Positions 4,823 through 64,000 of a stretch of DNA of 64,000 nt are shown one piece after another. Numbering within the stretch: position 1 is the stretch's first letter; each line of letters begins with the position of its first letter. The notes under the pieces are model-generated. The model did no database searches. It was not told the DNA's origin and was given only the letters and a program-made list of their open reading frames with translations. The stretch lies in contig OZ038379.1 of NCBI GenBank assembly GCA_964036045.1, forward strand, positions 76,012,001-76,076,000, written 5' to 3'. The translations under genes were made by a program, and so were the position numbers. Source of the DNA: Eutreptiella sp. 'Long Island Sound 2002'. Taxonomy: Eukaryota > Protista > Euglenida.

Positions 4823-6310
4823 ATGGAGCACCCACCGCCCGTGGGGATCGATCCTCGCTGGGCAACTGCTCCACGTGGATGGCGCCATGCTCACCCCACT
4901 CGAACGTTGACACCAAGTATGGCATATTTCAATAGCTGTGGAGGCCATCCGCACCAGCAACCAATATTCATCTCAGACACCCCTAAGCCTGTGCATGGTC
5001 TTCACCAACATCCAATCATGATTTCGGATGCAGACACTTTGTCGGGTTTCGCTCCCCCACCAGCATACTGCCCTGACGGTTCCGTGCAAATCGGGATGCA
5101 CCAGCCCATTTATTGTCCACAAAGCCCAATTTTTAGTGGCCGATGTGATCAGGCAGTGCGCTCACGCTCATCACCTTCCCGACAGCATGGCTCTCCCCAC
5201 GTCGCCACTCAATATTGGTCTGCAACCCCGGTCACTCAATTTTTGCAACAACCCGGGTCAGCGACCGCCGCTCCCCGATCCAAGAGGAGTTTGTGCAGCA
5301 CCGGTCGAAGTTTCAGCCAACTACAACAAAGAGGAAGGCCAAACCTTGCAGGCAGAGAAACGAGGTCTTGGGTTGAGAGCAGATTAATTGAGGTCTCCGC
5401 CGAGGACACACTTCCCTGTATTGTGGAATCGCGCATTGTTGAAGTCCCATACCCTGTCAATTGCATTCTGGAAATCCCTTTGATCGAAGAGATTTATGTG
5501 GATGAGGTGGCCGGAGAAAACAACACAAAGAACATGCCGGTTATTGTGGAACGAACCGTGGTTGTTTCTGAAGAAGAAGCTGTCTCGCCTCGTGCAAGAA
5601 GTAGGATTGAGGGGCGGGCTGAGTTTGAGCAGGTGCCGGTATTCACTGCAACAAACGAGGAACGTGCACCATCCTCCCCTTTGGATGTGGAGGCGATCAG
5701 GTCAGAGCAAGCCCCAGCCACTGGTAAACGTATGCGCATCCTTGGCGTGGAGCGTATGCCAGGGGAGCCTGTTCGAGCAGCCTGTGGTCAAATGCTGGGG
5801 CTTCGGACCGCAGAGTTAGGAGCGCTGCCTGTTCGGCTGTCACCCGTCAGGAATGCTCCATCCATCGCCTTTCAGTCAGCCCAAGGGGCGGAGATGCAAG
5901 TTTTAAACATAGCGCCAGCTCCCCCTCAGTATGTGTTCGGGGTGCCGCCAGCGGACATCTTTGCTGATGTTCCAGTTGCAGAGCTACCGAAAGGATTTGC
6001 TCCGGGTGGCGTCCAATTTCAGAAGAAGCAACTTCCGGACCGAGTGAGCACCACATTGGTGCCAGTTGAGACAGTGGTGGAGGTTCCTGTTGAGAAACTT
6101 GTGGAGAAGGTTCGCTATGAGGAGGTGCAGGGCATCACTGTGACCCAGACCAAGGAAATCCCAACGATCAACATCATCGAGAAACCTGTGGAGCGCATCA
6201 AGGAGGTTACTCGAGAAGTGCCTGTCCCCGTGTACAATGACACCGAAGTCCCAGTGATCAAACTCAAGGACGCCTATGTGTGCAAGCGCGTGGAGAAGGT
6301 GGTGGAGAAG
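4823..6310 (+). CDS. Giant gene exon 1: Pro/His/Gln-rich N-terminus followed by articulin/epiplasmin-like VPV/VEK repeats
   Basis: In ORF 4772..6328; first ATG at 4823 (start not certain). Contains VEVPYPV, VPVETVVEVPVEKLVEKV, IIEKPVERIKEVTREVPVPV and RVEKVVEK. Donor AAG|GTCTGC at 6311, phase 0; the repeat continues seamlessly in exon 2. Confidence 0.85.
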
Positions 6311-7570
6311 GTCTGCACCTGTGCCTGAGCCTGTGCACATGCCTGTACCTGTTTGCCTGTGCTTGTGTTTGCTGATGCGTGTCCGTCTGTGCACATGTCT
6401 GCATGTGACCGTGCATATGCATGTGGCGGGTGCCAAGCAAGACCTATCTAGCAACCCTCTTCAAGGTGATGTATGTGAAGTTTCTGAATTGTTCCAAAGA
6501 ATGCACACATGCAACACAATTTCTGGTTCCTGGGTTCTGACCAGTGGCGCACAGGCACCATGACCACCATGCAGGCAGAACACCCCGCCCTCAGTCCTAA
6601 ATACAATGCACCCTGCCTCAGAAGCGGCGACACTTTTGGACCTCTGGATTGCTGTCTGCATCAAGCGCAGGCGTGCAAGTGCCATGTACCCCCCTTTTTG
6701 GGGGGGGTATTCACATCGCATAGCCCACTGTATAAAATTGGACGTTTAACCCCTTGTAAAATCATCATTTGACCAAGTTATTGTCTAATGAATTTGTATA
6801 CCCCAACCCCTTTTGGGGGGGATTCGCCATACACCAATGTGCAAAATTGGATGTTTAACCCCTTCAAAAATTATATCATTCTGGGACACAAAATCACCCT
6901 TCAATGAATTTTGATTTGGACCCCTCCGCACCCCCCCCCCCCTTTGAGCTGGATAGCACTGAGGACACTTTTTCTGAACACTCCAACGGCGAAGCTGACC
7001 AGCAGCCATAATGGCACAACAAGACCGCGAGGTGCGCTGCCTGCCGCATGAGTTCCTGCTCATGCAACCTGCTGTGCGCGCACGCTGGGCAGCACAGCTG
7101 CCACGAACACGGGCGCTGTTGCAACATACTTATTTTTTGTCTTTCACAGCCCCAACAAATCTGCACTGTCCTGCACCTGAGGTCCCAGACAAACCCAAAA
7201 AAGGAAACAAACCCCAGAGGGAAAGAGTAGTTGCACAGCCATCGACTCCCACAATACCAACAACTGTCCTTGAAGTTCCCTGGGAGGACTGACTAGACAT
7301 TGTCAAAAACATGGTAAAGGTTTCCACAGGGTCACCTCTACAAATCTTCAACACCCACCAGCGCCTCGCCTCACACTTGCTTGATAACAATCAGCATTCC
7401 TCCGTGTTTCCTGTTTGTGTTGCCTGGTGGTGTTTAGGTGAGGGCACAATGTATGGACCCAAAAAGATGAGTTAATTGACAGATCTATATGCTGAATGGG
7501 TCAACATGGTGCATTTTTGCAATTCCTGGTGGATATGATTCATTTCGGCACGGGGGGGGGGGGGCTGCTT

Positions 7571-7862
7571 CCGATGGTCAAAAGTACCGCGCGTTTTGGA
7601 ACCCCTAAAATCGAGTTATGGCCATTTTAGTCACCCGGCTGGCCACGGCCGTTTCAAGCCGAAAAACACCCAAAATGGGAATAAATCGCAATTTCCCGGG
7701 GTTACATGCATTTTCAGCAAATGTTGCGAGAGACAAAAACGAAGAGCAAGAAATTCCGCATCCGATGGTCAAAAGTACCGCGCGTTTTGGAACCCCTAAA
7801 ATCGAGTTGTGGCCATTTTAGTCACCCGGCTGGCCACGGCCGTTTCAAGCCGAAAAACACCC
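7571..7862. repeat. Direct repeat of about 100 bp, period 191 bp
   Basis: CCGATGGTCAAAAGTACCGCGCGTTTTGGAACCCC...GAAAAACACCC at 7571-7671 and 7762-7862, nearly identical. Confidence 0.9.
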
Positions 7863-10800
7863 CCCCTCCCCCCCGCCAAACGGGCATGCGTGCAGCCACA
7901 CAGCAAGGCACGGCATGGACGTGGAGGGACGGAGGTGACTTAAACCCCCATACCCCAGAGGTTCTGGCTCAGGCGAGGCATGACCCGAGCAGGCGCTAGA
8001 CAGGACAGCTGCATGACATGCATGACAGTCTGCATGCTTTTGGAGGCGCCCCAGGCGACCACGGGGGCCTTGGACCCATACGGGCCTCCCTGTATAATAT
8101 TGTTCTTCCCCCGACCTTTCCACACACACACACACAGACCCGCCACCAACACATTTATGCTATTTTTATCTCGGCGTACCGCAGCCGGGAAAATGAAAGC
8201 GGGCGGAACGTAAGGGGCTGCTCCAGTCCAATCGACCTCCCTTCCTGAGGGCCTGAGTGCTCGGTAGACGGTAGGGGGACGTGGTAGTGTATGGATACAA
8301 TTTTTGGAGGGACCATCCTCGCAACTCGATGGGGAGATAGAAGCCATTGCGGATTTGCTTCGTATAGCCCCTTCAGATGTAGAACCGCATGTAATGTGTT
8401 CGTCAACACATGTCACAAACATCCTCTTATTTTTTCTCCCATCTTGGGCGGACAGTGGGTGGACCAGGGTGCTGACGTCCGAAGATTAAATTGCGTGTCA
8501 TGCAGTGCGTCCACCACAAGTGCTCCCACCAACAGGTGACAGTACACTGGCACGCTCGCTCACCCCTAGCCCGATGACCTTAGTGTACCCCTTATTAGCA
8601 TCCCCATCTGCCAGTGATGGATCTAATTTGTGCGCCACTCAGGGGGTGGGGGTGGGGGGGGGGGGGTAGTGAATTGTGACATGTCACAAAAAATACAATA
8701 GGCCATAGTGGGAAAACAGCTTTTCTGAAAATATTGTGACACCCAAAAGGCTCTGCGGTACTTCCTGAGGGCAGTGGTATTTCCTGAGGGCATGTGGGCA
8801 GGTTGCTGAATAGTTGTGTCTGTGCTTCTGACCTTGCTTCTGACCTTGCTGTTTTTTGTGACATGCATCCATCCATTGCATGCACAGCATAGAGATGAGA
8901 CGCGGTGTCAACTGACACTGTGTTCTCTGTAGGCTCTGAAGACTGCCGATTTGTCTGCTGCATCCTTCCGACAGCCTTTGTCACAGTTCTGTCATGGGTC
9001 GAAAGAAAGTGGAATGTCAGTGTGATCCGCCGTGTGTTTCTGCCGCGGCATGTCGACGCACAGTGAAAGAAGAGCTGCGTGAACTGCAGAAAAAACATGG
9101 TCCATATGAGAGGTGGTTGCGTCACAATTTAGTTGTGCGAAAAGAGGTCAAACAGGCTGTTTTGCAGGGCTGGGTGTTGGACAGTAAGGGGGTCGGGGGC
9201 GCTGATGTGACGAAAACAATTTTGTTGACAAAGCTATTGCAACAGCTAGAGGAAAGGTTTCAGAATGAGGCATACTCCCAGCTGCAGGTTGCAGATTTCA
9301 AAGGACAAAGGAAAAGAACGGACCAAGGAACGCGTTCTGCCAGAAACTGCAGAGTATGTTGATAACCTGGGACAGGTTTCAGATTCAGGCAGCTCCCTGT
9401 CCTCTTTTGGAAGCATTTCCACAGATGCTTCCAGCGCAAGCGCCCTCACTGTCAGTGACGAGGAAAGTGGTACTGACAGTGACAGTGACAGTGAATGAGA
9501 ACCCTGCTGCACAGTGACAGTGAATAAGAACCCTGGTGGACTACCCAGAAACAAAAAAAAACTGTTTGTTGTTGCCTGTACCCTGCTGCACACACATGCC
9601 TCTCTGGAAGGGTTGTCCTGCTTGCCTCCTGGTACCCTGCGTGGCTCAATCTGTGACCGGGTTTTTTTGTGACGCGTATTGTGACGCCTCGTCACAACAG
9701 GGGGGGGGGGCGGGGAGGGAGGGACACCCCCCCCCCCCCAATTAGATCCATCACTGCCATCTGCCACCTTCGCCAATATACTCCCCAGTGGCTCGGTCTC
9801 TGTCGCTAGTGTATCCACCGCTGACTCCTAGCCCGCAGTGTGGTACGCCGCTGTGAAGCGGCGCAGGAAAGTTAGGTAGTTATTGTCGTAATTTGCGGCC
9901 ATTGTATGGTTTGTTCGTTGCGGTGTTTCCACTCTTGACCAGGTTTGCTATGGTTCGTTGCGGGGGGCAGATGAGCAATGCGGGAATTGAGCGTGCTATG
10001 TTTCTCCTACGACTCTAATCCGCATCCCAAGCTGTGTGCCAATGTGTTAGTCATCGGCCTGCCAGTGTGGCCTCTTGGACATGGAACTTATGGTTTCGCT
10101 GATGAATGGTAGGATCCTAGGCTTGTTGAACCTCGCAATTTGAGCTTTGACTGAAATCCTTGGGCGTCACACACACATGCACACACATACCACATAGGGA
10201 GTACCTTTTTTTTTGGTACGGGGGGGGGGGTCCAAGAACATATTGAAGAGAGGTTATTAGATCAAGCCCAGGTGCAAACACATTACACCCTCTTTTTGCG
10301 GGGTCGTTCGCATAGCATACCCCAAGGCATGGTTTTGATGTCTAACCCGATGTAAAATGTTTTTCTTGCAGGATAAAAACAGTTCCCCAATGGATTTTTG
10401 ATTTTGAGCCCTTTATCCCCCCCGGAGCTGGATACCATTTTTTAGGAGGTGGGGGGGGGGGGGGGGCAATAGTTTGTGCTTCGAAGGATTTGAACTAGGA
10501 TTGGTAAAGCAACTCATGGGCGAACCAACACTCGCTTAGTCTCCGGTCAAATGTTCTACGACTCCACCATTGATCGTTGGTACTGAAGTGCTGTTCCCCG
10601 CTTCTTGTAGCTGTAGGCTTCCACCAAAAAAAGCCAAACTGTGTGTTTTTGCCTATATGGTGAGCATAACCTGGCATACCAGGAATACCTGGTAGTATAC
10701 GGGTAAAAAAGGGGGTTTTGGGAGAAAGGGGTATGTGGCATGTACAGGTGGCTACTAATGTACAATGCACAATGCATGCATAGGTGGGTTGGGGAATACC

Positions 10801-10863
10801 TCTAGTTTGCCAATTGTGATGATGAATGTTGTGTTTGAAACTACCCCATTTTGGGCTCTTGGG

Positions 10864-10957
10864 GTATACGGCCGTATGCTCAAGGCTCCAATACCTCAGT
10901 ATACGGCCGTATACTCTGGAGTACACGGCCGTATACTTAGAGTGTACGGCCGTATAC
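10864..10957. repeat. Palindrome array 1 (GTATACGGCCGTATAC, 4 copies)
   Basis: Copies at 10864, 10899, 10921 and 10942; one is perfect and three carry a single substitution. Confidence 0.9.
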
Positions 10958-11099
10958 CGGGGGTATTTGTTTGCACCACGTGGTTGTTTCAAGTTGAAAA
11001 ATTCCATTTTTGTGCCTTTTGTGCCCATCTTGTTGCATGCTTTGCCTTTGCCAAACAATTGCACACCACTTGAAACCAATCTAGGCTCATACTTCACTC

Positions 11100-13368
11100 A
11101 TGATACTCATGATTGCAATGTATGTCTCCATATGTGTCCATTTCAATCCATATTATGTTGCTTCTTGCTCTCCTAGGCCCCCTTTTTCTGGCACCATGAC
11201 TGATGTGGGCACTCATGCCTTGCTGAAGAAGTGGGCCGACCACGTAGCTCTCCGCACAGTGCACAGAGGTGTTTACAGCCCCGACAGCACACGCACCGTG
11301 TCTTGGGCTTCTCTTGAGAATTGTGCTTGGTCCACCTTGGACACCCCTGTGGCCCCGGTGAAGGTAACGCAACCCGGCGTTGCCCAACCGCACATCCTCA
11401 CTGACCCTCTGTTGTCGTTGTTTGACAACAACCCGAATCTGCAAGCTATTGTGCTGCAGCTCCATGACACGGATGCCCGCGCTGTCGTGGAGCACGTTAA
11501 AAAAAGCTGTGGGGGACCAAATAGGGGGATGAGTTTGTATTTGAGGGAATGGGAGCTGCCGGATGGCTCTCCGGGGATTCCGGTCTCGGGGGACCTGGCT
11601 GCTGGCTGGTGCAAATGGGAGTGCAAGGCCCAGCAAGTGCAGCGGGGGCATTGGGAGGACACCGCCCCCCTCTGCTCCCTCCACTCCCAGTCGCCATGGT
11701 CGTGGCATGCCGATTTGGAGGGCCACACCCTCCCCACCTGGTACAAGGGTACTGGGATGCACCCCTCCCTTTTCTTCCCCCTCACCACCACCCCCCTTTC
11801 TGGTGTTGAACACCATCGTGTCTCCATCCCCATTGAGGTCGTCGATCATCGTCATGTCGACGACCTCAAGGATTTCAAGCAATGGGGCCATGCTTTCCAA
11901 ACTGGCTTCATTTCTGTCGATTGGATGGACAAGCTTCAGAATGAGTATGGGGAACTTAGGGGGGATGCGGGGGTCAATATTTTTAATGAGGATTGGCCCG
12001 CCGACACTCGTGCAAGGGACAGTGACACGCGCCGCACATTGACTCCACCGGAGGGGGGTGCAATGTACAGCTTTGCAAGGGAGGTCCTTATACCCCACTT
12101 GGAGACTTGGGTTGGAACTGTCCGGTGGTGAATGTTACCACCTTTATTGTGGTGCAGGCCGGTACAGTGGATGTGGAAAAAAAACAGTGTTGGCACCGTG
12201 ACATTAACCTCAGCTATGTTACCGGTCCGGACCAACACCATGTGATTTGCTTGTTCCCGATGTTCTGCCCCACACCCGATGATGGTTGTGCTGGGGATTT
12301 CGTGGTTGCATCACACACGGGCCTCCCGGACCCTTGGGTGGAGGCCCCATTGGCCCCATTGGCCATCGGGGATGTGTGGTTGGGCATTGCACTTACTGTG
12401 CATCGCGGAGGTATTTGCCCTACCACTAACCCCAATCGGCCCCATGTTTTTGGTTTCATTTCAGTTGGTACCTCAAGGTTCGACTACAACAACACTTGCG
12501 CTGTTGTTGTTCCCCCTTGGGCCAGCAAAGCGGCCGCATCCCCCCAAGGGTCTCAAGGCCCTCATGCCACTTGTGGTGCAGTTGGTTGTGAGGTGTTGCT
12601 GGATGTGAGTGATGATACCACAGTTTTTTGTGTCACATGTGGTAACGTGCCATTGTGTGCCACCCACGGCGTGGAGGGGCAATGTGGTGCCTGTCAGGAG
12701 GGCGCTTGGAATCAGGGTGAGACAATGACGCAACACAGTGGTGTTGCATGGGGTCGTTGTCCGTCCCCACTGCAGTTCTACATGCCCGTTGATGGGGCTA
12801 CTTTTTTTGCAACTGATGAAAATTTGACCCCCAGCCCCCTTCGAGTTGGGGTTGAGGGACCCTTCATATGAGGAGTGCCCATTGCGGCAAATGCATGCTA
12901 ACCCCTTGCCTTTTGTGGGCTCGGATGGCACTTTCCTTGCTTGTCCCCCCGGTTCATTGGTGGTTTCGCGGGGTTCGATTGGTGGTGTTGCTTTGGCTTC
13001 CACCGATGCCACAATCGGCGGGGTTTTGCATTGGTTTGCACTTGGCCACAAGCACCACCTCATGGATGTTGCACTGGCGGAGAGCTACGGTTGGGTGAAG
13101 TGGTGGCCATTCAAGACCATCTCAAGGAAGAAGAAGTCCAAGCTGAAGCCCAAGCCAAAGTCAAGGAAGGGCAAGGAGAAGGCCGGGGAAGAAGTTGAGG
13201 ACGTGGAGGAGGAGGAAGAGGAGAAGAATGAGCTGTGGTGCATCTGCAATCAGGTATTTGTTGTGGGCTGTGGGCATGGGGGGAAGTGTGTTGTTGTTAT
13301 TCATTAAGTGTCATGCATGTCAAAAGGCAGGGTCACCGGTGGGTTTTTTTTTTGCCTGTCGTCAGTGC
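11100..13368 (+). pseudogene. Cargo gene A (frameshifted): possible JmjC remnant, PhyH-like 2OG-Fe(II) dioxygenase, Cys cluster, acidic/basic linker, decayed PHD finger
   Basis: Overlapping ORFs 11100..12131, 12107..12871 and 12846..13307. Dioxygenase motifs QCWHRD (12185-12202), GDV...VHRGG (His at 12401) and NRPHVFGF. Cys cluster CxxxxC...CVTC...CATH...CGAC. PHD remnant WCICNQVFVVGCGHGGKCVVVIH*VSC...[frameshift]ACRQC (13239-13368). Confidence 0.7.
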
Positions 13369-13549
13369 CTTGGTTGCGGCTCTTCAGGTTGAATTTTTCT
13401 TTGATCATCAACCTTTTCAACTTCTTCGCAGGATTCTTCAATGGCCTACACACGTTTTTGCATGTTTGAGGGCATTGGGGTTTGAACCAGGGACGTTACC
13501 GTGCAAGTGTAGCATGCATACCTCTCACCCACCCGGTGCCATGGTCTGG

Positions 13550-13763
13550 CAATACGGCCGTATACCTTGTGTATACGGCCGTATACTCCAGGTATACGGC
13601 CGTATACCGCGAGTATACGGCCGTATACCTGCCCACCCATTCCGGGTATACGGCCGTATACTCGGGGGTATACGGCCGTATACTTGTCGTATTTGTTGCC
13701 AATTTCAATCGATTTTGACTAGCTCTTTGTTAGAATTCCACCCTTTCGTATACGGCCGTATAC
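13550..13763. repeat. Palindrome array 2 (7 copies, spacing 21,21,21,33,22,80 bp)
   Basis: Copies start at 13550, 13571, 13592, 13613, 13646, 13668 and 13748. An adjacent segment of about 62 bp is directly repeated (13684-13746 and 13765-13826). Confidence 0.92.
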
Positions 13764-13883
13764 TCGTCGTATTTGTTGCCAATTTCAATCGATTTTGACT
13801 AGCTCTTTGTTAGAATTCCACCCTTTCTTCCCATGTAGGTCCAGTATGATCCCTGGCCACTGCGGAGCATCACTGATTACAAA

Positions 13884-14974
13884 GTGGCCGAGCCCGAGGT
13901 GGAGTTGGTGGCGCCGAAGGCTGCCGCGGGCCAAGTGGTCTCCGGTCGGGAGTACGTGGAACCCATTCCGGTGGATCGGGGGGATGCTGCCAGTGCGCCC
14001 TCCGACCTGGCATACCACTGGCAAAGACACTGGGTACTATTCCCGACTGAATGTCCGTGCCAGTGGTGCACTGTATGATATTCGCCTGCCCATTAGGGTC
14101 ATTGCAAATTTGAAGGAGGGGGTAGTGGAGGCCATTTGGGGGGCTGCAGTGTGGAGCAAGAGCTCCGGGAAGGTGCGGGTTTTTTTGAGCACCACGGGGG
14201 AAAAATGGAGCATTTCGGACTCCATCATGGTGCTCCAAAGTTTTGGGGGAGAGCCTGTCCCCCTGGAGCAATCCCTGGCCCTCCAGGCCGAGTTGGCCGC
14301 GAGGGCGGGAAAACAGCTTGGGGGGAGGGGGCTGAAGCGGGCTCATGATGAGCCCGCTGAGGTGAGCGCCACCCCTGCAGCCCCCCCCCACCCGGAAGGC
14401 CCCCAAGCCTTCCGGGTCAGTTGTTGCTGCTGTTGCTGTGAGCTCAGGGGGGCTTGAGGGGTTTGGGGGGGTGGGGGGGATTGAAGTGGCTGCCCGCCGT
14501 GGCGCATGCGAGGCCCTGGGGGACCTCGTTGTGCCCAGCACCACTCACATTGTCAGTGGTGTTGTGGCGGGCTTGGGGAAGTCCCGGCTGAACATCTCCA
14601 AGGAGATTGGGGAGTTCAGCCGGACTTCCCTGACCTCCTTGAGGGAGGCCAATGCCTCCCTCAAGGAGGAGCTGAAGGCTGCCCATGCTGCGGGTGACGC
14701 CAAGGAGAGGAGGATTGTCGACCTGGAGGCCAAGTTGGCCGAGGCCACCACAAGTGCCCATGACTGGCATCTCAAGGCCAAGGAGTTGGAGACGCAACTC
14801 CAAGCGGCCAAGGCCAATGAGGAGTGGGCGAGGTCCATTGTGGCCCATAGTGTCACACGGACTGCAGCCCCACCCCAAGGGTCTGAGAGTCAGGGCAGTG
14901 GGAGTCAGGGCAGCGGGAGTCAGGGCAGTCAGTCCGCCTCCCCAGCACGTGGCCTGCCCCCAAAGCCGCAATGA
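13884..14974 (+). pseudogene. Cargo gene B: unknown globular region plus coiled coil and SQGSG repeats (frame-disrupted)
   Basis: ORF pieces 13884.., 13795..14457 and 14438..14974. Heptad-like LREANASLKEELKAAHAAGDAKERRIVDLEAKLAEA...LKAKELETQLQAAKANEE. 15-bp repeats near 14888-14932. Confidence 0.55.
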
Positions 14975-15004
14975 CTACCCCCATCCAACCCCGCCCTTGC
15001 AGCT

Positions 15005-15589
15005 TTGTGCCGAGAGTTGGTGTACCGCAAATTGCACATCTTGGGTGTACAAGTGCACAATGTGCAGTTTGGGGCTACAGGGACACGCCGGCAAGGGAAG
15101 GATTGGCGTTGTGCGCGCTTGTGCAGCGGGAATGAAAGGCAAAGGGAGCTAATTTGCCTTTCAAATGCACATGTGCATGCAAATTTTCCAAGGTGGTTCC
15201 ATTGGACCACCATTCAAGTGGTACAATGCAATACTTCACAAAGAATGCCGGGCCATCGCCATATGAAGGATCCTTCTCCGCTTTCCGCCATTTGCGTTGT
15301 CGGGGCGCATAGTGGTGGGGAGGTCTGTGTGGAAACAGGTGGAGTGCTCCATAGTCCCACGCAAGGGACCCCGATGCGGTTGGATGTACATGGAGGTGGT
15401 GTTGTGGATGCGAAGGCCTACAAGGGCTGGCCGGGACTGGTTTTCAACTCCAAAGCCCACCACGGGCCTGCCCCATGGAGGGGGGAGCGCTATGCCATTG
15501 TTTTCTACAATGGGTGCAACACGGATTACCTCCCTGATGAATCTGTTGAAGAGTTATTGGCCTATGGCTTTCGTCCTTGGGGCCACTAG
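15005..15589 (+). CDS. Cargo gene C: TET/JBP-like 2OG-Fe(II) dioxygenase domain, HxD changed to HxH (possibly inactive)
   Basis: FHWTTIQV...GHRHMKD (15251-15271)...SAICVVGAHSGGEVCVE...LVFNSKAHHGPAPWRGERYAIVFY follows the TET/JBP order HxDxxD/N, GG strand, distal His, R-x-small. 5' end uncertain. Confidence 0.72.
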   Translation: MCRELVYRKLHILGVQVHNVQFGATGTRRQGKDWRCARLCSGNERQRELICLSNAHVHANFPRWFHWTTIQVVQCNTSQRMPGHRHMKDPSPLSAICVVGAHSGGEVCVETGGVLHSPTQGTPMRLDVHGGGVVDAKAYKGWPGLVFNSKAHHGPAPWRGERYAIVFYNGCNTDYLPDESVEELLAYGFRPWGH

Positions 15590-15595
15590 TGAGCA

Positions 15596-15661
15596 CCGTA
15601 TACTACTAGTATACGGCCGTATACCCTTGAGTATACGGCCGTATACCCGAAGTATACGGCG
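15596..15661. repeat. Palindrome array 3
   Basis: Full copies at 15609-15624 and 15631-15646, plus half copies at about 15596 and 15652. Confidence 0.88.
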
Positions 15662-16001
15662 AACGGTTTGCGCTGAATCTTGCATGTTGTGCCCTTGTGG
15701 CATGTGCCTGTGCGCACGGTTCCATTGGGCAACTGGCCCACATATGCCTGGAACATTTTTTTGCAGCAATTATTCTAACCACTATGTTTGCGAATGCCCA
15801 TCCGAAGGAGAAGGGGCTCTGTTTGGAGAGTATTCAAGAATTTTGTGAGGGAATCAAACCCGGCAATTGACCCCCTATGCAGTATGTGATCTGCATCCAC
15901 AAACGTCAACGCCACCACATTTTATTTTGTTTCACATCATATGGCCCACCCCGTTTTTTTTACATTAGGATTGCAGGGAAAGAGGACAACGGCAAAGACG
16001 T

Positions 16002-18320: not shown

Positions 18321-18337
18321 AAATGTTGGAATTGCAA

Positions 18338-51879: not shown

Positions 51880-52140
51880 TCCAAGGCACGAATTGGGACA
51901 CTGCTACCTCCGGCAAACATCAGACTAAAAATTCAAAATTTTTAGTACACCAGTAGAGGCCAACAGGGGCAAGAATTGAGACACTGCAACCTATGGCAAG
52001 CATCATACTTAAAATTTGAAATGCCAAGCACGGGAGCGGAGGCCAATAGGGGCCAAAATCGGGACACTCGGACCTACGGCAAGCATCGACTAAGAACCTG
52101 AACTTCTTGGTGCACCAACAAAAATTGGGACACTAGTACT
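51880..52140. repeat. Degenerate tandem repeat, unit about 80 bp, 3 to 4 copies
   Basis: AAT(T/C)G(G/A)GACACT...ACCT..GGCAA(A/G)CATC recurs near 51891, 51972 and 52056, with a partial copy at 52125. Confidence 0.7.
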
Positions 52141-55100
52141 TTTGACACCTATGCAATCTATTAGATTCCATCCATGGAAGAAACGGCACCGAGGCAAAGT
52201 TCAGAAAACGCTAAACAAATGTGTCCAAGCCTTGCAGCACCCATTTAGAGTGCATCAGGAAATATGCGTCGCCGCCAGGGGTCAGGACGACATCCCTCAC
52301 AAGGGTTTGTGACGAGAGGCAAGGGAAACGTCATGTTGGCCACCCATCCGCCCCCCAACCTATCCTCAAATACCAGTGTTGTCACCAAATAATCGCCCAA
52401 ACCCATCTCAGAAACTGTAGCGCAAAAGACTGTGCCAGGGATGGACAAACGGCCAAGCTCGCACCGGCCATGCGCGAACAAGGCCCTGCCCACACATATC
52501 CTACAGACGAACTAGACGCACTCCCATACCAACACCCTAATGCACGGGCTTTCGCAGCACGCAACAGATGTCAGCGGGGCATAGTAACATACGTGTGCAT
52601 AGGTGAGGGAACCCCCTTACCCATACCGCCAATGATCTTGTGCCAGCCTTTATAAGCCTGTAACGACTAGGATTGTGTATAGCGATTTAGTCGGCTATCA
52701 GACACGAGACATTAGACTTTTATGGACCACCATTACCCAACCATGAACCCCCCCTTCCCCAAACCCCTTGATTATGCACTACATCAGACCCCCCCCCCTC
52801 CCCGCCCCTGTCCACATGAAACATCTTCATTGGAAAAAGCCCCCCCCCCCAATGGGGACCCCCCCCCGTGACCCACCGATCCATCCCCTCACTCTTGGGT
52901 GCTTTCAAGCAGCCCCCCCCCCCAAGGAAAAAGTTGTCATGGAAAACACACAACCCCCCCGAAAACAATTGACATGGAAGATATGAACCCCCCCCCTTTT
53001 CTCCATGTGGGCAATCTACTTTAGCACATATTTATGCTCTGTCTATTATTGTTAGGGTTGCCAATTTGGTGGCCATGACCTTTTTAATGCTTCTGAAGTT
53101 CCGTGCTTGCATTCTCAGCTGTGACGGCGTGACTATAGGTGGTGTGTAGGTGTCATGTACTCACCCACTCGCCATTGTTTGCATGTTGTCCTTTTTCCTA
53201 CCCCTTCAGTGATGATGTAATTCATTTGTGCACCCTCACATATTGCACAATTGCACAGCACGGAATCGTTTTTCCCTAGGAGTTCTTAGATCCGTAGATG
53301 CAGTGCTTGGCATGTTGTTTCCGAAATCCTTAGGCCAGTCGGGCGTATTGCTGGGAACATCGCCGTCGAGTGGTCCAGCCGATCTCCCGTCAGCCTGGGC
53401 GTCCCGGAACTGTGCCCGCCGAAATTGGTCGGAAAAACGCTTCCGATGTTGGGGAGCTGCGCTGCTGATGATTGCCTCCGTTTTGGGAAGCAGTGCCTCG
53501 GCTGGCTGGTTGCCATCCTAGCACTGCTTCCAGACTCGGGCCGGGAAAACGCTTCCGATGTTCGGGAGCAGCCCTCCCGATGCTTGCCTCCGTTTTGGGA
53601 AGCAGTGCCTCCGAACATTGCTTCCGATGTTCGCAACCACTGCTTCCGATGGCGGGTTGCCGTCATACTCAGCACTGCTTCCACAATGCTTTGGGCAATG
53701 GCATGGACCAACCAGGACGTCTGCATCCCAAAAACCTGCCTTAATCCGATGGGATTTGACAAAAAGTTGTGAACCGAATGAGGACACTGCCAACCAGATC
53801 AGTGCCCGCAAAATAGGTGAGTTGGTTATTGCAGGACACCATGGCCACAGAAAATGAAGGTACTTTGTTCCGACCGGCATGCCCCGTTTTTCGAAAGCAA
53901 TTGCTCATGCTCGTGCACGGGGGTTTCTATCTCCTGCTTGGGTCCAAATTGAAAACACAGTGAAAACATGATACTGGCGCCCCTCCCCCCCAACCCCCAA
54001 AGGTGGTGACGCACGATGTACTGCCACTTGCTGCATGGCAGCTTTTTTTTCTTTCTTTGGCAGGCCACCGCACTCACCCCCACCCTTTCCCCTGAAATTG
54101 GAATCCGTGGAGTCCCGGCGGTGCCACTAACCCGTGGGATGCCAATGGGGATGAGCGATGCACGGATTCAAGTGGCTTGTCCGGGGCATGGTTGATAGTC
54201 TCGTTTTCGTGGAAAAAAAACGAACTATGTGATCTAATTTCTGGGGGATCTACTATCTTGTGTGTGTTTGTTAGCGGACAGTGCATAATCACGTGAACTA
54301 GTTTGATTGCCGTGAGAACGCCTACACGGCGACCAAGGTACCCATATAACAAGCACATTTTGATGCAATGAGAAAGCCTACATGGCAACAAAGGCACATA
54401 TGGAGCAAGTGAACTCAACGAGTGGACAATGGTGACAAATGGGCACAAATAATAACCAAATAAACTCTTCTTGAACACGAACTTCCACTACCTAAAATGA
54501 CTACGGTAAAGCATGCTTGCAACGTGCAAACACCCATGCAATGGCTACAAAAAAAGTGACTGGGCGTCTAAAAAGTGGCACAAAATGATAGCTAGCAACA
54601 GCATGGTCAAATAAACATTGGTGTTCCCTCATCGGACAAAGTCAACTAGCTTGATTGCCGTGGGGAGGTGTGTGTCCTTCGGCAGCAGACCCCCCCCCCC
54701 CCCCCGACGATCAAGGTTTCATCTCATGAGCAGAGAGAACGGCTGAGAGGGGGGGTGGCAGAGGGCAAAGGGCACGAGAATGCCAAGATCAGCACCCATA
54801 GTTTGGCCCGCACCGGACGCCGTGAGGCCGATGCCAATAGGGGCCGCCAGCACCGGACTCTTGATCTGTGAAAGGAACCCTCAGCTGGCCCTTCCCCCCC
54901 CTTTTCCGCGCTTCACTTGGGCGCGAGCGGAAAAGAACCACGTGCCTTGGTAATGCCTTGGTAACATGGTGGTGGTGGTGAGCGGTGGTCGTGAAACGCA
55001 ACTACAACACGCAGGTCAGCGCACGAGAATGCACCTGCAAGCATGTGTGTTGGGGGGGGGGGCGCAAGAAAATCGCGGTATCACTAGGGGGGGTACGGCC

Positions 55101-57036
55101 CGAAAAAAAAATTCCACCCCTATGTGTAAAAAAGTTTCGCAACCCTACTTTTTTTGATATGAAGAACGCCACACTGACCACCTCTTGGAACCCTGGTGGC
55201 TATTTCATATTGTGTAGGTGTAGGCTACATAATGCTTTGAGGTCTCCAAACATTCCCCATTTCGGTCGTACAAATTTGGTAGCCCTACATATCCCTGTCG
55301 GCCCAAAGTTCGGCCACCACCAGCGAGGGTGCTGGCTATGGGGCCCCAAGAGTTTCGGCTCGGGTAAAATTGGTCAAAATGACCCGGAATAGTAGCAATA
55401 GCACAAATAGCAAACTAGGTGTGGCATAGGTGAGGGTTGGGGAACCCTCCTTTGCATGCCATACTACTTCATACCGTTCCCTTGTTGCGGCTTTTTTTTA
55501 CGACCCCAGCTGAATTGGCAACGTTTCAACTAGTTTTGTGCACAAGCAATGTTGAACCCCAATTTGGGCCTATTGGACATTGGTGGGGTGCAATGTAGTG
55601 GCATTGACAACTTTTTCCCTCAGAAGCAAAACCAATGGTCACCAGTAGAAGCATTATAAGCCTTGTGGTATTCTTGCCCATTGTTGCTAGACCGCACTAT
55701 TTGCGCACAAAAAGCCGAAGAAATACTTGGGGGCATGGGTGCTTGCAACGTAGGTGGCGCAAGTGGTTGTTTTTGCACTACCCCCAGGGTGCGCCACAGT
55801 TCATGCACATGAGAAGGAGTGCGATGATATGTGCAGATTGTAGCATGGGTGTAATCACTGCACAATGTTGAGTAAGCTTCTGGCGGATGTCTTGAACACT
55901 ACCACGGCCAAGTGTGCCCTTGGCAACTGTGCCTAGCAAAATTTTGGCCCTGAGTTTACGTGTCCACACTCGGCACGCTTGGGCTTCATTGGGTGAAGTG
56001 GCAGTTCGTGCCAAACCATCAGGAAGTAGCATAATGTCAACGAGCTCCGCAACAGTGGAAAACTCGGTGTAGAGTGCACAACCACTTGGAGCCCGAGGAG
56101 ATCCTTGTAAATCAACATAAAACCATCGGTCATTCCTGCTCCCCACACCAATCAAGAAACCCTTGTACTCCATCAAAAAGTACAAGCGCGCAGTTGGTGA
56201 AGGAGGGGTGGTTGCAAGGCGGAGGACAGTTTCCTTGGCTTCAATTCTGTGTCTTCAAAGGAGGTGAAATCCAACAACTTGAGGACTTGGAATGACGTAT
56301 AGGTGCAACTAGCACGCAACCCGCCACCGCGTGTGATCCAAGTGGTTTCTGCCCCAATGGCGACACAAATGGCCTCAAGAAGGGTGTACCCCATGACCGG
56401 CATCGATGTTGAGGACAATGCCGTTGTCAATAACGTTGTAGAACTCCTATATGAGGTAGTTGCACCCAGCTAGGCAGTAACACCTTTGAGCAACATTGCA
56501 AGACCAGCCAGCATCACCTGCGCCTCATGCAAGAAAATCGCACCCCTCAACCACGGGAACGCACATTGTTGACTCTTTTTTCCGGCAAAACAATCCAGGG
56601 GGAATCCCGACCTGCAATCTACTCCTACCATGCCAACGGCGACAACCACCCCAATGACCGAGCAATCCGTTGTGCCTGTGGAATTGCCACTCCCACCCCC
56701 ACCACCTTGTCCAAAAGTGCTGCCGTTTGGAATCAAAGATGCAAACCATTTACGGCAGGCATATCCACCACTACGCCACGGACATGAGAAGGCCGCACAA
56801 CGTCTGGTTGATGTGCTTGGAATTGGGAGATCCGCCGTGTACAGGTGAAGGATCCTATGATTCCATGGGGTGCATTGTACCATGTTCCCCATGTGCTAGT
56901 GTGAGGGGAAGTGTCGTGCTGCATCGTTGGATGGTTGAGGCTAGACAAAGGTGTATAGCATTGGAAATTCGGCTTCGAGGCTTTGTGAATCCGGGCCGAT
57001 GGTCACCGCCGTGAAAAGAGGACCGTCGGTCAAAAA

Positions 57037-57940
57037 TTGGCTCGTAGCATTCATCAATGCCAACAGTTGATGATCAGATGTGCACAATCGCAAGCATTGA
57101 TCCTTGCAGTTGCCGACGACGATCAGCCGTTGCTGCAAAGGCGCTTGGCTCGGCTCATTGGTGGTGGACATTCCCCTTCGGCTATTATGGCAGACATGTC
57201 TGAGGCATTCAAAATCAGAATGTATACCGAGAAAGAGAAGGCTATTGCCGGATTAGCCGCTCTTGGTGTGGGGTGTGTGTGAATTTTTGAAAGTTGCCAA
57301 CCGCGGCGGCATCTTACCATCGTATGACACGGCCGTGGTGGACATGAAGTTTGAAAAGCCGTTGCGTGCGGGGATCGCCCTTACAAGGACATTCATTCTA
57401 AAGCGTCTCCCCAACCATCTTCATCCGCTCTTATGGGATCTCTTTGTGGACGAGATTTCTTTGCAACCTCAGATTGGGGTGGTGAAATCGGGCCATGCGA
57501 CCGGTACATGTAGAATGTGCACCCCGAGGGAGCATCGCTTGGTTGACCAAGAAACGGTGGATGAACTGGCTAACTTGCATCAAGACTGTAACACCAATGT
57601 CCATTTCGCTGAGTATGCCACGGCGTGGTCGGTTGCTGCCCACCATGGTTCCCTCTACCGCCCAATCGCGCTTTGGGTAGTTCCCACTTGCAACCGCTTC
57701 ACATCCGACGACATGGCTCAACAACATAGGCAACTTGTGACTACATTTCGTGGAGTATTCAAGTCATCACGCCCACGTGATGCCATGGCGTTGATAGCCA
57801 TTGACGGCGATGGTTGCCGCAGCCGTGCCTTGGATGAGAGCTTGAAACATGGAAGAGGATGCATGCCAGCAACAGGCGTTGCGCCTAGGCGACCAAGACG
57901 CCGAGCAAGCTATGGCAACCCAAGACATAGCAGATACTGA
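57037..57940 (+). pseudogene. Second DDE transposase-like relic (frameshifted near 57270)
   Basis: ORFs 57037..57282 and 57263..57940. WDLFVDEISL (Asp), GTCRMC...H, YRPIALWVVPTC and ALIAIDGDGCRSRAL (Asp) fit the first two catalytic strands of an RNase H-fold transposase. Confidence 0.6.
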
Positions 57941-58245
57941 ATGTGATCCACGCAGCGGATCAGAGCCCTCAAATTTTGATGAAGAGAAAGTGGACAGTAG
58001 TTCGGGTGCCTCTGATGCCTGAAATTTCTACTCCACCAACTCAAACTCCAGCACATCCTCTTCATCTAGCTCCTCATCTAGCTCTAGTGCTGCAACTGTA
58101 CATGCTAGTACCTCAACGAAAAAGTGCACCACAAAGAAGGCCTACTCCGCTAAACGTAAGCTTTCCGTTGAAGATACAGCTCAAAAGAAGACAAAGGCCA
58201 TGTAATTTGGAAGGGATTCCCACTAAACTCTTGTGAGCTAATTTG

Positions 58246-58382
58246 GATCTCCCTTGTGTGAATTGGCTTTGATCTCCGTTGTGTGAACCGGCTTTAGATC
58301 TCCATTGTGTGAACCGGCTTTGATCTCCGTTGTGTGAACCTGCTTTGGATCATCTCCATTGTGTGAACCGGCTTTAATCTCC
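58246..58382. repeat. About 25-bp tandem repeat (GATCTCCRTTGTGTGAACCGGCTTT), 5 copies
   Basis: Head-to-tail copies with no spacers. Confidence 0.9.
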
Positions 58383-60538
58383 AAGGCAGGTCATGGTGGG
58401 GCAGGTGCCATACCTTGGCACCCCGGCTATGGCGTGTCCATGGTTTGATGATGTGAAGTGAAACGGCCGGGTGGAAAGATTGGCGTCATGGGGTCCATAA
58501 CGGACATGGGGCAACCGCTGAACAGCTAGGATGAGCCATCCGAACCACGCGGGGTCCATGAGCTAGCACTGTGGACATGTACACAGTGGCAAGGAAACCA
58601 GAACGGCCGGGTGGGAAGATTGACATTGTGGGGTCCACAGTAGACTTGGGGCACCTACTGAACGGCCATGACGGGCGATTGTACCCACGCAGGGTCCACC
58701 GGTTGCTTGCCCGGGTTCTCGCCCCATGCACTGTGCATGGGGACTCTTACCGCCAACAAGAGGCCAGGGTGGGGTGCTGCGACACAATGCGTAACCGGGA
58801 GTACTCAACAGCCTTTGTGCCCTTAAACATAAATACCACCCGTGTCGGCAATGCACGTTGTTTGCTGGTTCCTGGCATTGTGCTGCAAAGCATGCCATGG
58901 AGAAGGCCACCGACGGCTACATGTCGCAAATGGCATGTTGGACATGGGCTAGTACCCCGAATAGCCAAGCAAAGGAATGCCAACAAGTGCCAAAGGCATG
59001 TTATGCGGTAGGAACACCGCAATTATGTGTGGTACGTGCGACATGGGAAGAAGTTTTTTTTGTAGGACCCTTTTTTTTCACCCCCCCTTAGGGCCCTAGG
59101 GGGGTCAGCCCCGAAAAAAAATATCCCACCTGGTATCAAAAAAATCCCCCCCCCCCCCTTGGCATGTGTGTATCTCGGGTATTCAGCTAAGAACGCCAGA
59201 GCCCGTGTACCACACACACAGTAGGCGGGTTACAGAACACCAAACAGAGGACATCCTAACCAGTGACTCAATAGGGAGACAACCAAGTCACATTTTGGTT
59301 GAATTCCAAGCGATTGTGTGAATGAATCTTGACGGCAAGAAAAATCGCTAGCGGGGGTGATGCGGGGCCTCGTGGCCACCTTGAGCTTGGGCTACAATCA
59401 CTAGCCCATTTGAAGTGATCGCCATCCGGGCCCATATGGGCGCCCTAACCTATTGGTGCAAAGTGCCATTCGGAGATCCCAAGGGGTTATGGTTGGGCCA
59501 GCAGATGGATGTGAGGGATGTATGGTCCCCACGCTGAGGACCATGCTAGCCCAGGCCATGTACCCCCGAAAGCCCCACGATTGCTGTTGTTTTGGCATTT
59601 TTGTGGCTCTTAAGATTTTATGAAGATTCTACTTCTTCCGGCCCTAGGATGGGTTTGGGTGATCATTTGATGACAATACGGCAGGTTGAGCACCCATGGG
59701 GACCCATGGAGTTGCCGCTCGGTCCATGTAGCCCGCGCCATGGGCCCCTCCAAAAGCCCTGAAATGCTATTGTGTGGGTAGTTTAGTGGTACTTGGCCAT
59801 CTTGGAAAATCCGGCGTTTTCCGAAACCCTTTTGTTGGTGCTGGGGTGGGGCTCCATGATCATTTGGTGACAATAATGGGTGCTCGAATACCCATGGGGA
59901 GCCATGTAGTGGCCGCTAGGCCCATGTAGCCCGAGCCATGGGCCTTGCAAAATCCCTGAAATTGCTATTGTGTAAGTAGTATAGTGGCACTTAACAATGT
60001 TCCGCACGTTCGACTTTTCCTGAAACCGTTCTGTTGCCCCTAGGATGGAAGTTTGGGTGATCACTTGGTGACATTACCAGTTTCTGAGCACCCATGGGGA
60101 CCCAAGTAGTGGCCGGTGGGCCCATGTACACTGAGACGTGGGCCCCCCGAAAACCCCGAAATTGCTGGCATTTGAGGCTGACAACTGGCAACTGGTGAAA
60201 ATTCAGCATTTTTTGAAATCCTTACGTCTCCCGTGGGGTGCGTTTGGGTGATACTTTGGTGGCCAGACCCCCCCCCCCTCCCTCCCCAAAGGATGTGGGT
60301 CTACCCCACACTGCCTCCCCCTTCAGCAGGGGGTATGGAGCCACCAACCCCGATGGCCCATGCTTGTGCATACGAATACGAGGGGCAAAAATCACTTGTT
60401 AGAGCATCCCTGTTCGTCCGGGAACAACTTTCAAAAAATTGTTTTCGACCACTTTTTGACCCACCCCTGGTAACCTTCTGTTAGCAGGTGTCAGCACGCC
60501 ACTGTGCGGTGCCGGTAAAGCATTGAAGGGGGTTGGTG

Positions 60539-61013: not shown

Positions 61014-61260
61014 GTTGGTGGTGCGCAAAGGGCCAGGTGCACGCCATAGTGTATTTCATTGGGAGAGACAATGGTACCCTACCCTCATGCCAACAGTTCT
61101 CCAATGATTCGGTTTGGTGGCATGGGGCAAAGGGATTGAGCAACTGGGACTCTTGCCGAAAGGACCGCGCCACGTAAGTGCTCCCACGTACACTGTCTTT
61201 TGCTCCTCTGGTGGCTTTGTGTGTTTTGTGTTCTGTCATGCGACATCTGTCTGCCCACAG

Positions 61261-64000
61261 GACTATGTGGATGCAAAGGGGCGCCGTGTGGGCGACGAGG
61301 GGTTTGTGCCCCCCACAAGCGCAACGAAGCGTGCGCTGCCCGCTGGGTGCTACGACGACGGGTACCGCGACGCCAATGGCCGTCGGCCTGGGGATGTTGG
61401 GTTTGTCCCGCCACTCCTCGCACAGGAGGGCAAGACCGCTGCAGACATGCAGAGGGAGCTCCCGTCGGGATATGACCGCAACTATCGGGATGCGGCAGGT
61501 CGCAAACCTGGTGATAAGGGGTTCGTGGCGCCCACAGGAAAGCCGTTTGTGATGCGTGACTCAGAGACAGGGCTGGTGTCTTTTGTGCGCCCTGTGGCGG
61601 CACAGGCGCCAGATTCCCCACGGCAAAGGCTGCAGCAAGGTCCCCATGGCGCCGATGAAGGGGCGGTGCTGTTGCCGCAGTCGTCACTGCACAGCCAGGC
61701 ATCCCCGCATAGCCTGGGGCAGACCAGCACATGCACCAGCAGCTCGTTCAATTCTCCTCACAGCCCGCAAGGAAGCCCCGGGCAGGCCAGCCATACCCCG
61801 TCAGACTCTGGCACGGAGGTGGTTGCGGAGTTCCCGGTGATTACTGGGTACACTGCTGAGTACGTGGACACCCGGGGGCTGGTGCCGGGGCAGAAGGGGT
61901 TCCAACCTCCTGTGATCAATGACGCCAAGGGGCCCAAGCGGCCACTGCCTGCCGGGGGCTATGATCGGGACTACATTGACGCGCAGGCGCGGCGCCCCGG
62001 TAACAGGGGCTTTGTGCCCCCGCTGCGGGGCATCACCGACCCGGTCGCGCGTGCAGAGAAGGCTGCTGGGCTGGCGCAGGGGTACGACCAGGACTACCGT
62101 GACTCGGAGGGGCGGTGCCTGTCTGACGAGGGGTTTATCCCTCCGGTCTACACACAGGAATATGTGGACCCAGATGGGCACTGTCCAGGGGAGCAGGGCT
62201 TCATGCCACCGGTTGGGGGCGGTGATCCCATGGACTACGGGGCATACAACGCCCATTACCGTGATCGCGAGGGCCGCAAGCCTGGTGAAGAGGGCTTTGA
62301 GCCACCCCTTGCCAGCCGCGGCCAGAGCCCCCGGGAGGGCTACGACGAGTTTTACCGTGATGCCCGGGGGCACAAGGTGGGCAATGCCGGCTTCCTGCCG
62401 CCCACCAAGACACAGCCAGTTGTCATGTATGACAAGCAGAAGGGGATCGTGCACATTGTGCCCAAGGCTCCTTCAACCCCGGCCTCCAGCCCCGATGCCC
62501 TGGAATCCAGGCCCGTAGAGATACCGTTCACCTTTCCGGTGTACACCGATGCCTACGTGGATGACTATGGCCGCAAGGTGGGAGAGACTGGGTTCATGCC
62601 GCCAGGCCACGTTGGGATGCCCCTCCCTGAAGGGGGCTACACCGACCAATACCGGGACCGGGCCGGGCGGAAGCCTGGCGAGCGAGGGTTTGTGCCGCCC
62701 AAGGCCTACATCGAGGGGAAGACCCCGGAGCAAATGGCGCTGGAGCTGCCCCAGGGCTTTGATGAGGGCTACTTCGACTCTGAAGGCCGGCAAATGGGAC
62801 ACCCTGACTTCCGTGCACCAGCGCCGCGCCCAACCGACGGCCTCTTGGGCCTCGAGGAGAGCGGCTTCCAACCAAACTCCTCCATCTATTACCAGCAGAG
62901 CTTCTGCGATGCGTCCGGCCTCATGCCCGGCGATGACGGTTTCATGCCGCCGGGAAAGAAGCGGGCAATGGAGGCGGGCACCTACGATGACCACTACGTG
63001 GACCCCAGTGGCAAAGTTGCGGGGGAGCCAGGGTTCGTGCCACCCGGCAAGACCTTTGGCCTCCTGGAGGGCTATGACGAGTTCTACCGTGACCCGAATG
63101 GCTTTGGCCCCAGCGACCCCAGATTCACCCCACCAAAGGTCAAGATCCCATCCCAAGGGTCGCAGAGGAAGATAGTGCGCCGCCGGTCCACGGCGCCCAC
63201 AATTCGTCGCATCACGGGGCTGCGGTACCATTTGGACTCCGTGAGGCGGCCCATCGGGGTGCTCTTGGACATGTCTGGCAAGCCCATCTACTATACATCC
63301 GCCTGGCCCGCAGTGGTGTGGTCCACCGATGTGGGCGCCCACGTGGCCATCGCAGACACGATGGTAGACGATGTGGCATCTGCCAATCCGGACCTGCTGG
63401 TGGTGGACCGCAGCCCACTCACCAACCTGCACACTGGCCGGCCACTGAGCCTCAAGCGCGCGCGGCGCATTGCGCACTACCTGTGTGACAAGTCTGCGAA
63501 TTTCCACGCCCACTCACTCGACCCAGTCACGGATGTGTACGGGGACACCTGCTTTGACAAGACCGGGCGGCCCATCTTTGTTGTCAAGCCCAAGGAGTGG
63601 GTGAGGGCCCCAGACGGCAGCAAGGTCCTGGATGCGACCGGCCAGCCCATCTCCCAGCACACCGCCCAGCGCTACCTGGGCATTCCCCCGGGAGAGGCCC
63701 ACATGTGGGTGGCGGAGGTGGAGGTCTCCGACAAGGGCCAGGTGCTGTACAACGTTGATGGGAGCCCGCAGCTGCGAGTCGTGAAGTCAAAGAAGACGAA
63801 CATTGTGATCAAGGGGCCCTCTGGCAAGGCCCTACAGAATGTGGACAGCAAGGCCTTCACGCGGGGAGAGCTGCAGACAATGGCGGGGCAAAACAAGGTG
63901 CTGGTGCTCTCCCGCAGACGCCAGGACGCAGTGCCTGCCCGATCAGAGGAGCACCCAATGGCGCTGGTGGTGGATCAGTCGGGCGGGCCAGTGTATGACC
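61261..64000 (+). CDS. Giant gene exon 7 (open at window end): 15 further repeat copies (first is the intron-split copy 45), then a second repeat-like region
   Basis: Absent from the ORF track. Acceptor CCCACAG|GAC gives TYTQ|DYVDAKGRRVGDEGFVPP, which completes the split repeat. I saw no stop in this frame in the stretches I translated (61261-61980, 62521-62580, 63121-63600, 63901-64000); the repeat register is kept in between. Confidence 0.9.

Follow-up and report, generated by a model that had tools for sequence, protein, structure and literature searches.

The locus and its exons

The stretch of DNA analysed here, 64,000 nucleotides of the euglenid Eutreptiella sp. 'Long Island Sound 2002' (hereafter the window; contig OZ038379.1 of the 2.28-Gb assembly GCA_964036045.1, positions 76,012,001-76,076,000, plus strand), holds the first part of a gene model of 15 exons for a predicted giant protein with an articulin-like segment, more than 20 C2 domains, a PDZ domain and long arrays of a 22-residue repeat, here called the GYD repeat. 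Joined by script, the exons comprise 39,270 nt and 13,090 codons without a stop in the carried phase; they span about 172 kb (contig positions 76,016,823-76,188,988), and the predicted product would have a mass of about 1.4 MDa. Positions beyond the window are given in extended coordinates, which carry the numbering of the window downstream (position x is contig position 76,012,000 + x). A preliminary description of the window had proposed a hidden protein of some 4,000 amino acids (aa) or more; its proposal of one multi-exon gene is retained here, but the protein is closer to 13,000 aa, the window truncating the gene. On the evidence set out below, which is drawn from sequence, we put the probability that the locus is a real, single giant gene built broadly in this way at about 0.7, and we infer that it is expressed as a single mRNA. 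Homology searches were run exon by exon, and the joined protein was used just for counts of stops, length, mass and junctions.

All exons lie on the plus strand. Exon 1 (4823-6310, 496 codons, donor AAG|GTCTGC) encodes a low-complexity head of 409 aa followed by an 87-aa articulin-like segment with acid-base dyads; since the head has a weak coding score (+0.065 bits/codon), the true start is uncertain. Beyond intron 1 (6311-24709, 18,399 nt, of which dispersed repeats are the largest part), exon 2 (24710-25729, 340 codons, acceptor ...GCAAAG|) encodes, in order, the closing 35 aa of the articulin-like segment and a weak C2-like domain, then a clear C2 domain (25283-25603) with PQDFG as its closing motif, and finally the opening strands of the domain that follows. 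Exon 3 (27816-28346, 177 codons) supplies the remainder of this divergent C2-like domain, which closes with PINFG and is followed by a linker; its weak match covers positions 29-94 of the C2 profile, so that the start of the domain must lie in exon 2. Exon 4 (30192-30641, 150 codons) is taken up by a single complete C2 domain, which closes with AVNFG, and exon 5 (31370-32053, 228 codons, or 208 if a second possible donor at 31994 is used) encodes a further divergent C2-like domain, with AADFG as its closing motif, and then a linker. Exon 6 (32563-37599, 1,679 codons, donor CAG|GTATGC) carries 44 units of the GYD repeat, laid out as five super-repeats of six units together with extra units. Intron 6 (37600-61260, 23,661 nt), which contains a block of old dispersed repeats with 70% G+C and further repeats at 53,237-58,500, separates it from exon 7 (acceptor ...CCCACAG|, donor CAG|GTTATC). 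The latter runs from 61261 to 76,050 extended (contig position 76088050) and has 4,930 codons, 913 of them in the window (61261-64000), where it encodes GYD units and the first part of a tandem pair of unique domains of about 230 aa each; its open frame reaches 76,125 extended, 5,006 codons without a stop. Exon 8, after an acceptor AG at 82,233 extended, has 3,278 codons inside an open frame of 3,333 codons and ends in ...GVTSQ; exon 9, which lies 9.4 kb beyond it, begins with GFGKG, and further exons are found at 114.8, 116.6, 149.2, 150.9, 154.1 and 174.5 kb extended. The open frames present at the locus also include one of 1,775 codons.

Thirteen of the 14 junctions are GT-AG and one is GC-AG, and none introduces a stop in the carried phase. 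The six junctions in the window are all GT...AG in phase 0, and the seven ORFs (open reading frames) that the preliminary description had joined in frame (496 + 340 + 177 + 150 + 228 + 1679 + 913 codons) were all recovered, as were its introns of 18.4 and 23.7 kb and the completion of motifs over both long junctions. At intron 6, the end of exon 6 (...GFIPPTYTQ) and the start of exon 7 (DYVDAKGRRVGDEGFVPP) together form one 22-aa repeat unit, and in a scan with a profile of the unit the first match of exon 7 starts four residues ahead of the exon boundary. At intron 1, where exon 1 ends in ...KRVEKVVEK and exon 2 starts with VVEIPVEKMVQKV, it is the articulin-like composition that continues: when the six-frame translation of 203 kb was scanned in segments of 35 residues, 27 out of 165,390 were V/I-rich, charged and A/G-poor, and all of these fall in the two flanks of the intron, in the final 87 aa of exon 1 and the initial 35 aa of exon 2. 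Moreover, an intron falls inside each of five C2 domains, and the exon after it completes the domain in register. Intron 7 cuts one of them at position 63 of the profile (positions 8-63 on the exon 7 side and 63-128 on the exon 8 side), a domain split by a 20-kb intron joins positions 8-64 to 63-132, and others join 9-97 to 97-131 and 10-78 to 81-120. The GFG motif that closes the domain is rejoined across introns 8 and 11, the junction at intron 11 reading VAK|GFGKK, and the breaks at introns 6, 7, 8, 12, 13 and 14 each divide a repeat unit or a C2 domain.

Every one of the 138 repeat units and of the 25 C2 profile matches is on the plus strand, and neither kind of match occurs in the 30 kb upstream or at 177-253 kb. 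When a codon model was trained on exon 7 together with exon 8 and then applied to the remaining exons, each of these scored +0.21 to +0.68 bits/codon, against -0.16 ± 0.10 for the intron background (best of three frames); a search for missed exons over 253 kb found no further plus-strand open stretch of at least 70 codons with the codon signature of the gene.

Domains and repeats of the predicted protein

The articulin-like V/P/E/K segment was recognised in the preliminary description and is, as stated there, divided by the first long intron. It totals about 122 aa (87 + 35) and five VPV motifs: the tail of exon 1 has 32% V+I, 34.5% charged residues, 2.3% A+G, 10 acid-base dyads and four VPV, and the head of exon 2 has 43% V+I, 31% charged residues, 2.9% A+G and one VPV. 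This is the composition of the articulin/epiplastin class, for which acid-base dyads, high V+I, low A+G and, in the case of articulins, more than three VPV have been given as criteria (Goodenough et al., 2018; PMC6212826). The segment is thus like articulins and epiplastins (the 80K and 86K proteins of Euglena, from the same group of organisms) in being V/I-rich, A/G-poor, rich in dyads and provided with VPV. The core of articulins, however, contains more than 30 twelve-residue VPVPV--V-- repeats (Marrs & Bouck, 1992; PMC2289617), whereas the segment found here is short, irregular, without a regular 12-residue period and less than 1% of the protein. Exons 1 and 2 gave no match at E ≤ 1 to the alveolin family (Pfam IMCp, PF12314), the sole Pfam hit being a weak one to DUF7436 (E = 0.049). 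Both parts of the segment are single copy in the genome, as is exon 2 as a whole, and the genome holds no paralogue in which the exon 1/exon 2 region is intronless.

Twenty-one C2 copies, plus three weak ones, match a profile made from the C2 domains of the gene itself. Against the Pfam C2 family (PF00168; curated cut-off 22 bits), exons 7, 8 and 11-14 score above the cut-off, with 97.8 and 42.9 bits in exon 7, 179.5 bits over seven stretches in exon 8 and 33.5-49.2 bits in exons 11-14. The copies in exons 2 and 4 reach 18 and 16 bits, below the cut-off, with E-values of 1.8e-18 and 6.9e-20 against the gene's own profile, and the C2-like copies in exons 3 and 5, together with the first copy in exon 2, reach 2.7-9 bits. 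Of the five early C2-like domains that had been proposed, two therefore match the profile of the gene significantly; the other three are weak, though in the right register. Each C2 domain in the gene ends with a conserved GFG/DFG/NFG motif, and the four closing motifs named in the preliminary description (PQDFG, PINFG, AVNFG and AADFG) were all found.

When a profile of 17 C2 copies was used to search PDB sequences, the best match was extended synaptotagmin-2 (E-Syt2; 3.9e-20), followed by synaptotagmin-1 and dysferlin. The calcium-dependent subclass of C2 domains is recognised by calcium-binding Asp residues in two loops, those of the SDPY motif in loop 1 and those of DxD...D in loop 3. None of the 17 aligned copies has an Asp two residues before the conserved loop-1 Tyr, which bears out the earlier remark that the canonical calcium-binding Asp residues are mostly absent; only about half of them keep one loop-3 Asp, as judged by comparison with an alignment of E-Syt2 C2A. 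The last C2 domain (exons 14/15), which is outside the 17-copy alignment, shows RDPY and several loop-3 Asp residues by eye and may be an exception. The C2B domain of E-Syt2 is not known to bind calcium, and the aligned copies, which by these residues fall outside the calcium-dependent subclass, resemble it in lacking the loop-1 Asp. The occurrence of C2 domains in tandem recalls extended synaptotagmins, ferlins and MCTP, among which E-Syt2 is nearest by PDB sequence. The gene differs from these multi-C2 tethers, however, in the number of its C2 domains (21-24 as compared with 3-7), in their alternation with an unrelated repeat and in their GFG/DFG/NFG endings, and Pfam detected neither an SMP lipid-transfer domain nor a transmembrane anchor in it.

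A PDZ domain (PDZ_2) is present at residues 1240-1317 of exon 7, with 32.7 bits against a cut-off of 27; this domain and many bona fide C2 domains lie outside the window and so were missed in the preliminary description. Earlier in the same exon, residues 655-1125 (L016:1963-3375) form the unique pair of domains, two tandem copies of about 230 aa that are 25% identical (E = 6e-21) and rich in D-x-x-G-x-P turns; a word search returned no relatives, and in the genome there were two weak matches only, on C17. In exon 15, directly after the last C2 domain, a weak match to the PEGA domain (L021:1538-3988; 20.3 bits against a cut-off of 20.8) precedes a tail of about 600 aa that is rich in Ser and Pro. 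The predicted protein also has linkers that are long, acidic and Ser-rich.

The GYD repeat makes up the arrays of exons 6-8, in which 136 of the at least 138 units of the gene are found. The unit has 22 aa (GYDxxYRDxxGRxPGxxGFxPP). Six units, at spacings of about 36, 41, 22, 33 and 40 residues, make up one super-repeat of about 200 aa, of which there are at least 14 occurrences; in an alignment of 14 super-repeats the identity is 46-53% and 25 columns are invariant. Expansion of the array is ongoing. Exon 7 contains a tandem in-frame duplication of 1,917 nt with about 98% identity (69,680-71,450 extended as compared with the same stretch shifted by 1,917), and exon 8 contains a second one with a period of 1,581 nt, of which a core of 510 nt was recovered at 99% identity (88,010-88,520 extended); both preserve the reading frame. 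In the exon 7 duplication, 16 of the 20 codons that differ are inside one patch of 48 nt (70,624-70,671 extended), which resembles a local conversion or replacement but could equally stem from the assembly.

Relatives of the repeat were sought among 1.84 billion representative proteins, which yielded 59 matches at E ≤ 0.001. Those with a name are from Eutreptiella, Entosiphon, Ploeotia and Chasmostoma, all of them euglenids, with no named match from any other group. The GYD repeats constitute an undescribed, euglenid-specific family, which by these matches spans photosynthetic and deep-branching phagotrophic euglenids. The giant novel repeat array of the preliminary description is thus large indeed and belongs to no described family, but it is not unique to this gene, since the same genome has about five other loci of what is a small euglenid family. 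On C19 two ORFs of about 3,150 codons carry the repeat, in inverted orientation and 170 kb from one another (2,546,783-2,552,782, minus strand; 2,714,790-2,720,825, plus strand); the remaining loci are on C3 (179.85-179.93 Mb), C14 (52.518-52.542 Mb) and C23 (7.176 Mb). Two of the relatives, A0A7S4FTV3 of Eutreptiella gymnastica (2,355 aa) and EP01012_P009753 of Entosiphon sulcatum (2,557 aa), share with the gene the 22-aa unit and the order of the super-repeat, at 37-39% identity over 650-850 aa. They differ from it in that their repeats are joined to long coiled coils and that they are without a C2 domain, a PDZ domain or an articulin-like part.

Matches of the repeat outside the family were sought by sequence and by fold. 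The exon 6 repeat matched no Pfam family at E ≤ 1, a sequence profile of the repeat found only a chance hit to RPB2 in the PDB (E = 0.13), and a search of the ESM Atlas gave no usable hit. The Rhs/YD repeat, considered for the Y-x-D-x-x-G-R in the unit, was rejected, there being no match to the RHS_repeat profile and no match to the PDB in sequence or fold. An AlphaFold2 model of the super-repeat, with the 14 in-gene copies as input, has a mean predicted local distance difference test score (pLDDT) of 90.5 and a predicted template modelling score of 0.73; it consists of three short helices and otherwise of isolated bridges only. The pair of 230-aa domains, for which two sequences were the input, gave a model with a pLDDT of 39.5 that is unusable, and serves as a control of sorts. 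Compared with the PDB, the super-repeat fold returned nothing below E = 5 with Foldseek and nothing at Z ≥ 2 with VIA-align (48,161 chains). A repeat family confined to euglenids, with a confident predicted structure unlike anything solved, is a good target for structure determination.

One gene or several, and a possible cortical role

Euglena trans-splices its mRNAs, as is well established, so that adjacent coding units can be separate messages, and it is conceivable, if unlikely, that the locus consists of two or more adjacent genes, each with its own spliced leader (for example exon 1, exons 2-11 and exons 12-15). Several features would suit such an arrangement and weigh against a single gene. 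A stop falls five codons past the proposed donor of exon 1, which could be a separate small articulin-like gene, and the G+C content at third codon positions of this exon is 0.53, as compared with 0.61-0.77 in the others; an in-frame Met lies nine codons into exon 2; and the join of exon 11 to exon 12 requires the GC donor, over an intron of 32 kb. The 3' end of the gene is not fixed either, a Ser/Pro/Tyr-rich frame at 187,042-187,962 extended being a possible additional exon. Moreover, in the protein collections the locus is represented by per-ORF gene calls alone (P0001, P0004 and P0006), whose 90% clusters have no other members, and a word search with exon 2 returned the locus's own gene call as its sole match. 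Separate genes are difficult to reconcile, however, with an articulin-like composition that is confined, in 203 kb, to the two flanks of intron 1, with the VAK|GFGKK junction, which rebuilds a closing motif of the C2 domain over the very 32-kb intron in question, and with the six introns that bisect a repeat unit or C2 domain, so that the parts cannot stand alone. That the gene is silent or decaying, and its open frames leftovers, seems very improbable: the collections searched held no transcript-derived protein of the locus, but the frames of 5,006, 3,333 and 1,775 codons are without a stop, all exons have a positive codon signature, the splice sites of every junction are intact and the recent tandem duplications stayed in frame. 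Gene callers that proceed ORF by ORF fragment the locus into unrelated 'proteins', and giant genes are therefore easily missed in transposon-rich protist genomes.

If, as we favour, the exons form one gene, the predicted protein would begin with the low-complexity head, the articulin-type segment of 122 aa and five divergent C2-like domains, to be followed by arrays of GYD repeats alternating with pairs of C2 domains, of the extended-synaptotagmin kind and predicted to be calcium-independent; it would further contain the PDZ domain, the two unique domains of about 230 aa, acidic Ser-rich linkers and the Ser/Pro-rich tail with its weak PEGA-like stretch. The pellicle of Euglena is a classic model of a membrane skeleton. 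To our knowledge few of its parts are known beyond articulins and IP39, and we know of none that explains how membrane, skeleton and cisternae are kept in register. A skeleton-type segment, 21-24 C2 domains of a membrane-binding kind, a PDZ domain and repeat spacers would fit a cortical scaffold that staples the membrane to the epiplast. Possibly, the protein is anchored in the membrane skeleton (epiplast) by insertion of its articulin-like segment, the C2 domains pin it at many points to the plasma membrane or to the endoplasmic reticulum (ER) cisterna beneath each strip, the PDZ domain holds a membrane protein by its tail, and the repeat modules serve as folded spacers or offer a periodic surface for binding. 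We put forward a role as pellicle scaffold tentatively, and infer location and function alike from the parts of the protein; with its skeleton-type segment, more than 20 C2 domains and PDZ domain, the predicted 1.4-MDa protein is a testable candidate for the link.

The same set of parts would also fit a contact tether between ER and plasma membrane or some other cytoskeletal structure, and a single gene acting outside the pellicle skeleton, whether in such a tether, the flagellar pocket, the feeding apparatus or elsewhere in the cytoskeleton, is a somewhat less likely option than the pellicle. Its C2 profile is nearest to extended synaptotagmin-2, and the articulin-like part accounts for just 122 of 13,090 aa. 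The repeats of Entosiphon and Eutreptiella adjoin coiled coils rather than C2 domains, a point that weighs against a cortical scaffold; since the relatives pair the repeat with coiled coils, the repeat alone does not point to the pellicle. Nor is it tied to flexible pellicles, being present in the rigid, phagotrophic Entosiphon and Ploeotia. A role outside the pellicle is disfavoured by the lack of a Pfam match to an SMP domain or a transmembrane anchor, and by the presence of an articulin-type segment and a PDZ domain, both reported for membrane-skeleton proteins: PDZ domains occur in cryptophyte epiplastins, though none of the epiplastins described there has C2 domains or the GYD repeat (PMC6212826).

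A bolder version of the scaffold takes the super-repeat of about 200 aa for a new compact fold, nearly free of helix and sheet and stabilised by conserved Tyr/Phe and Pro residues, from which euglenids would build megadalton filaments; the gene would then be a giant member of the family, joining membrane to epiplast along the pellicle strips. We consider this quite unlikely. If it were so, the gene could provide the component that makes the euglenid cortex elastic or sets its spacing, a part for which we know of no molecule. In general design the predicted protein recalls titin and obscurin, which likewise exceed 1 MDa, have giant exons and consist of long series of small folded modules with disordered linkers; the modules, however, are unrelated (no Ig or FN3 domain occurs in the gene), and the lineage and the presumed cell structure are different.

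Dispersed repeats in the introns and downstream DNA

Four samples of the two long introns proved to be dispersed repeats, and the introns are therefore long through transposon insertion. In intron 1, the stretches 8612-9757 and 16710-18320 have copies with 99-100% identity on many contigs; for the second, at least 40 copies were scored at this identity, from 2,380 first-look candidates. At 10,864-19,482 in the window, intron 1 contains a very young dispersed element punctuated by arrays of a 16-bp palindrome (GTATACGGCCGTATAC) with a period of 21-22 bp, in whose seven largest ORFs no Pfam domain was found. A transposase reading of an intron repeat ORF was not confirmed; the young dispersed repeat alone was. 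In intron 6, the stretch 44,000-47,000 has copies with 69-91% identity on many contigs, and 53,237-58,500 has copies with 73-93% identity. Its G+C-rich block (about 40,000-48,600 and 50,500-52,000; 70% G+C) is open in many frames and belongs to an older family of dispersed repeats. A Pfam scan of 20 intron ORFs found no domain apart from one weak match to zf-RVT, a zinc finger of reverse transcriptases, at 47983-48615, which is the sole domain hint in the block; the block may be a decayed long interspersed nuclear element.

In intron 3, a tandem repeat of 162 bp at 29,083-29,499 of the window (2.6 copies, 75% identity) yields a spurious ORF on the minus strand. Downstream of the gene, at 225,520-252,998 extended, the minus strand has several long open frames (L026-L028) that the codon model of the gene scores as coding and whose products resemble retroelement proteins by eye.

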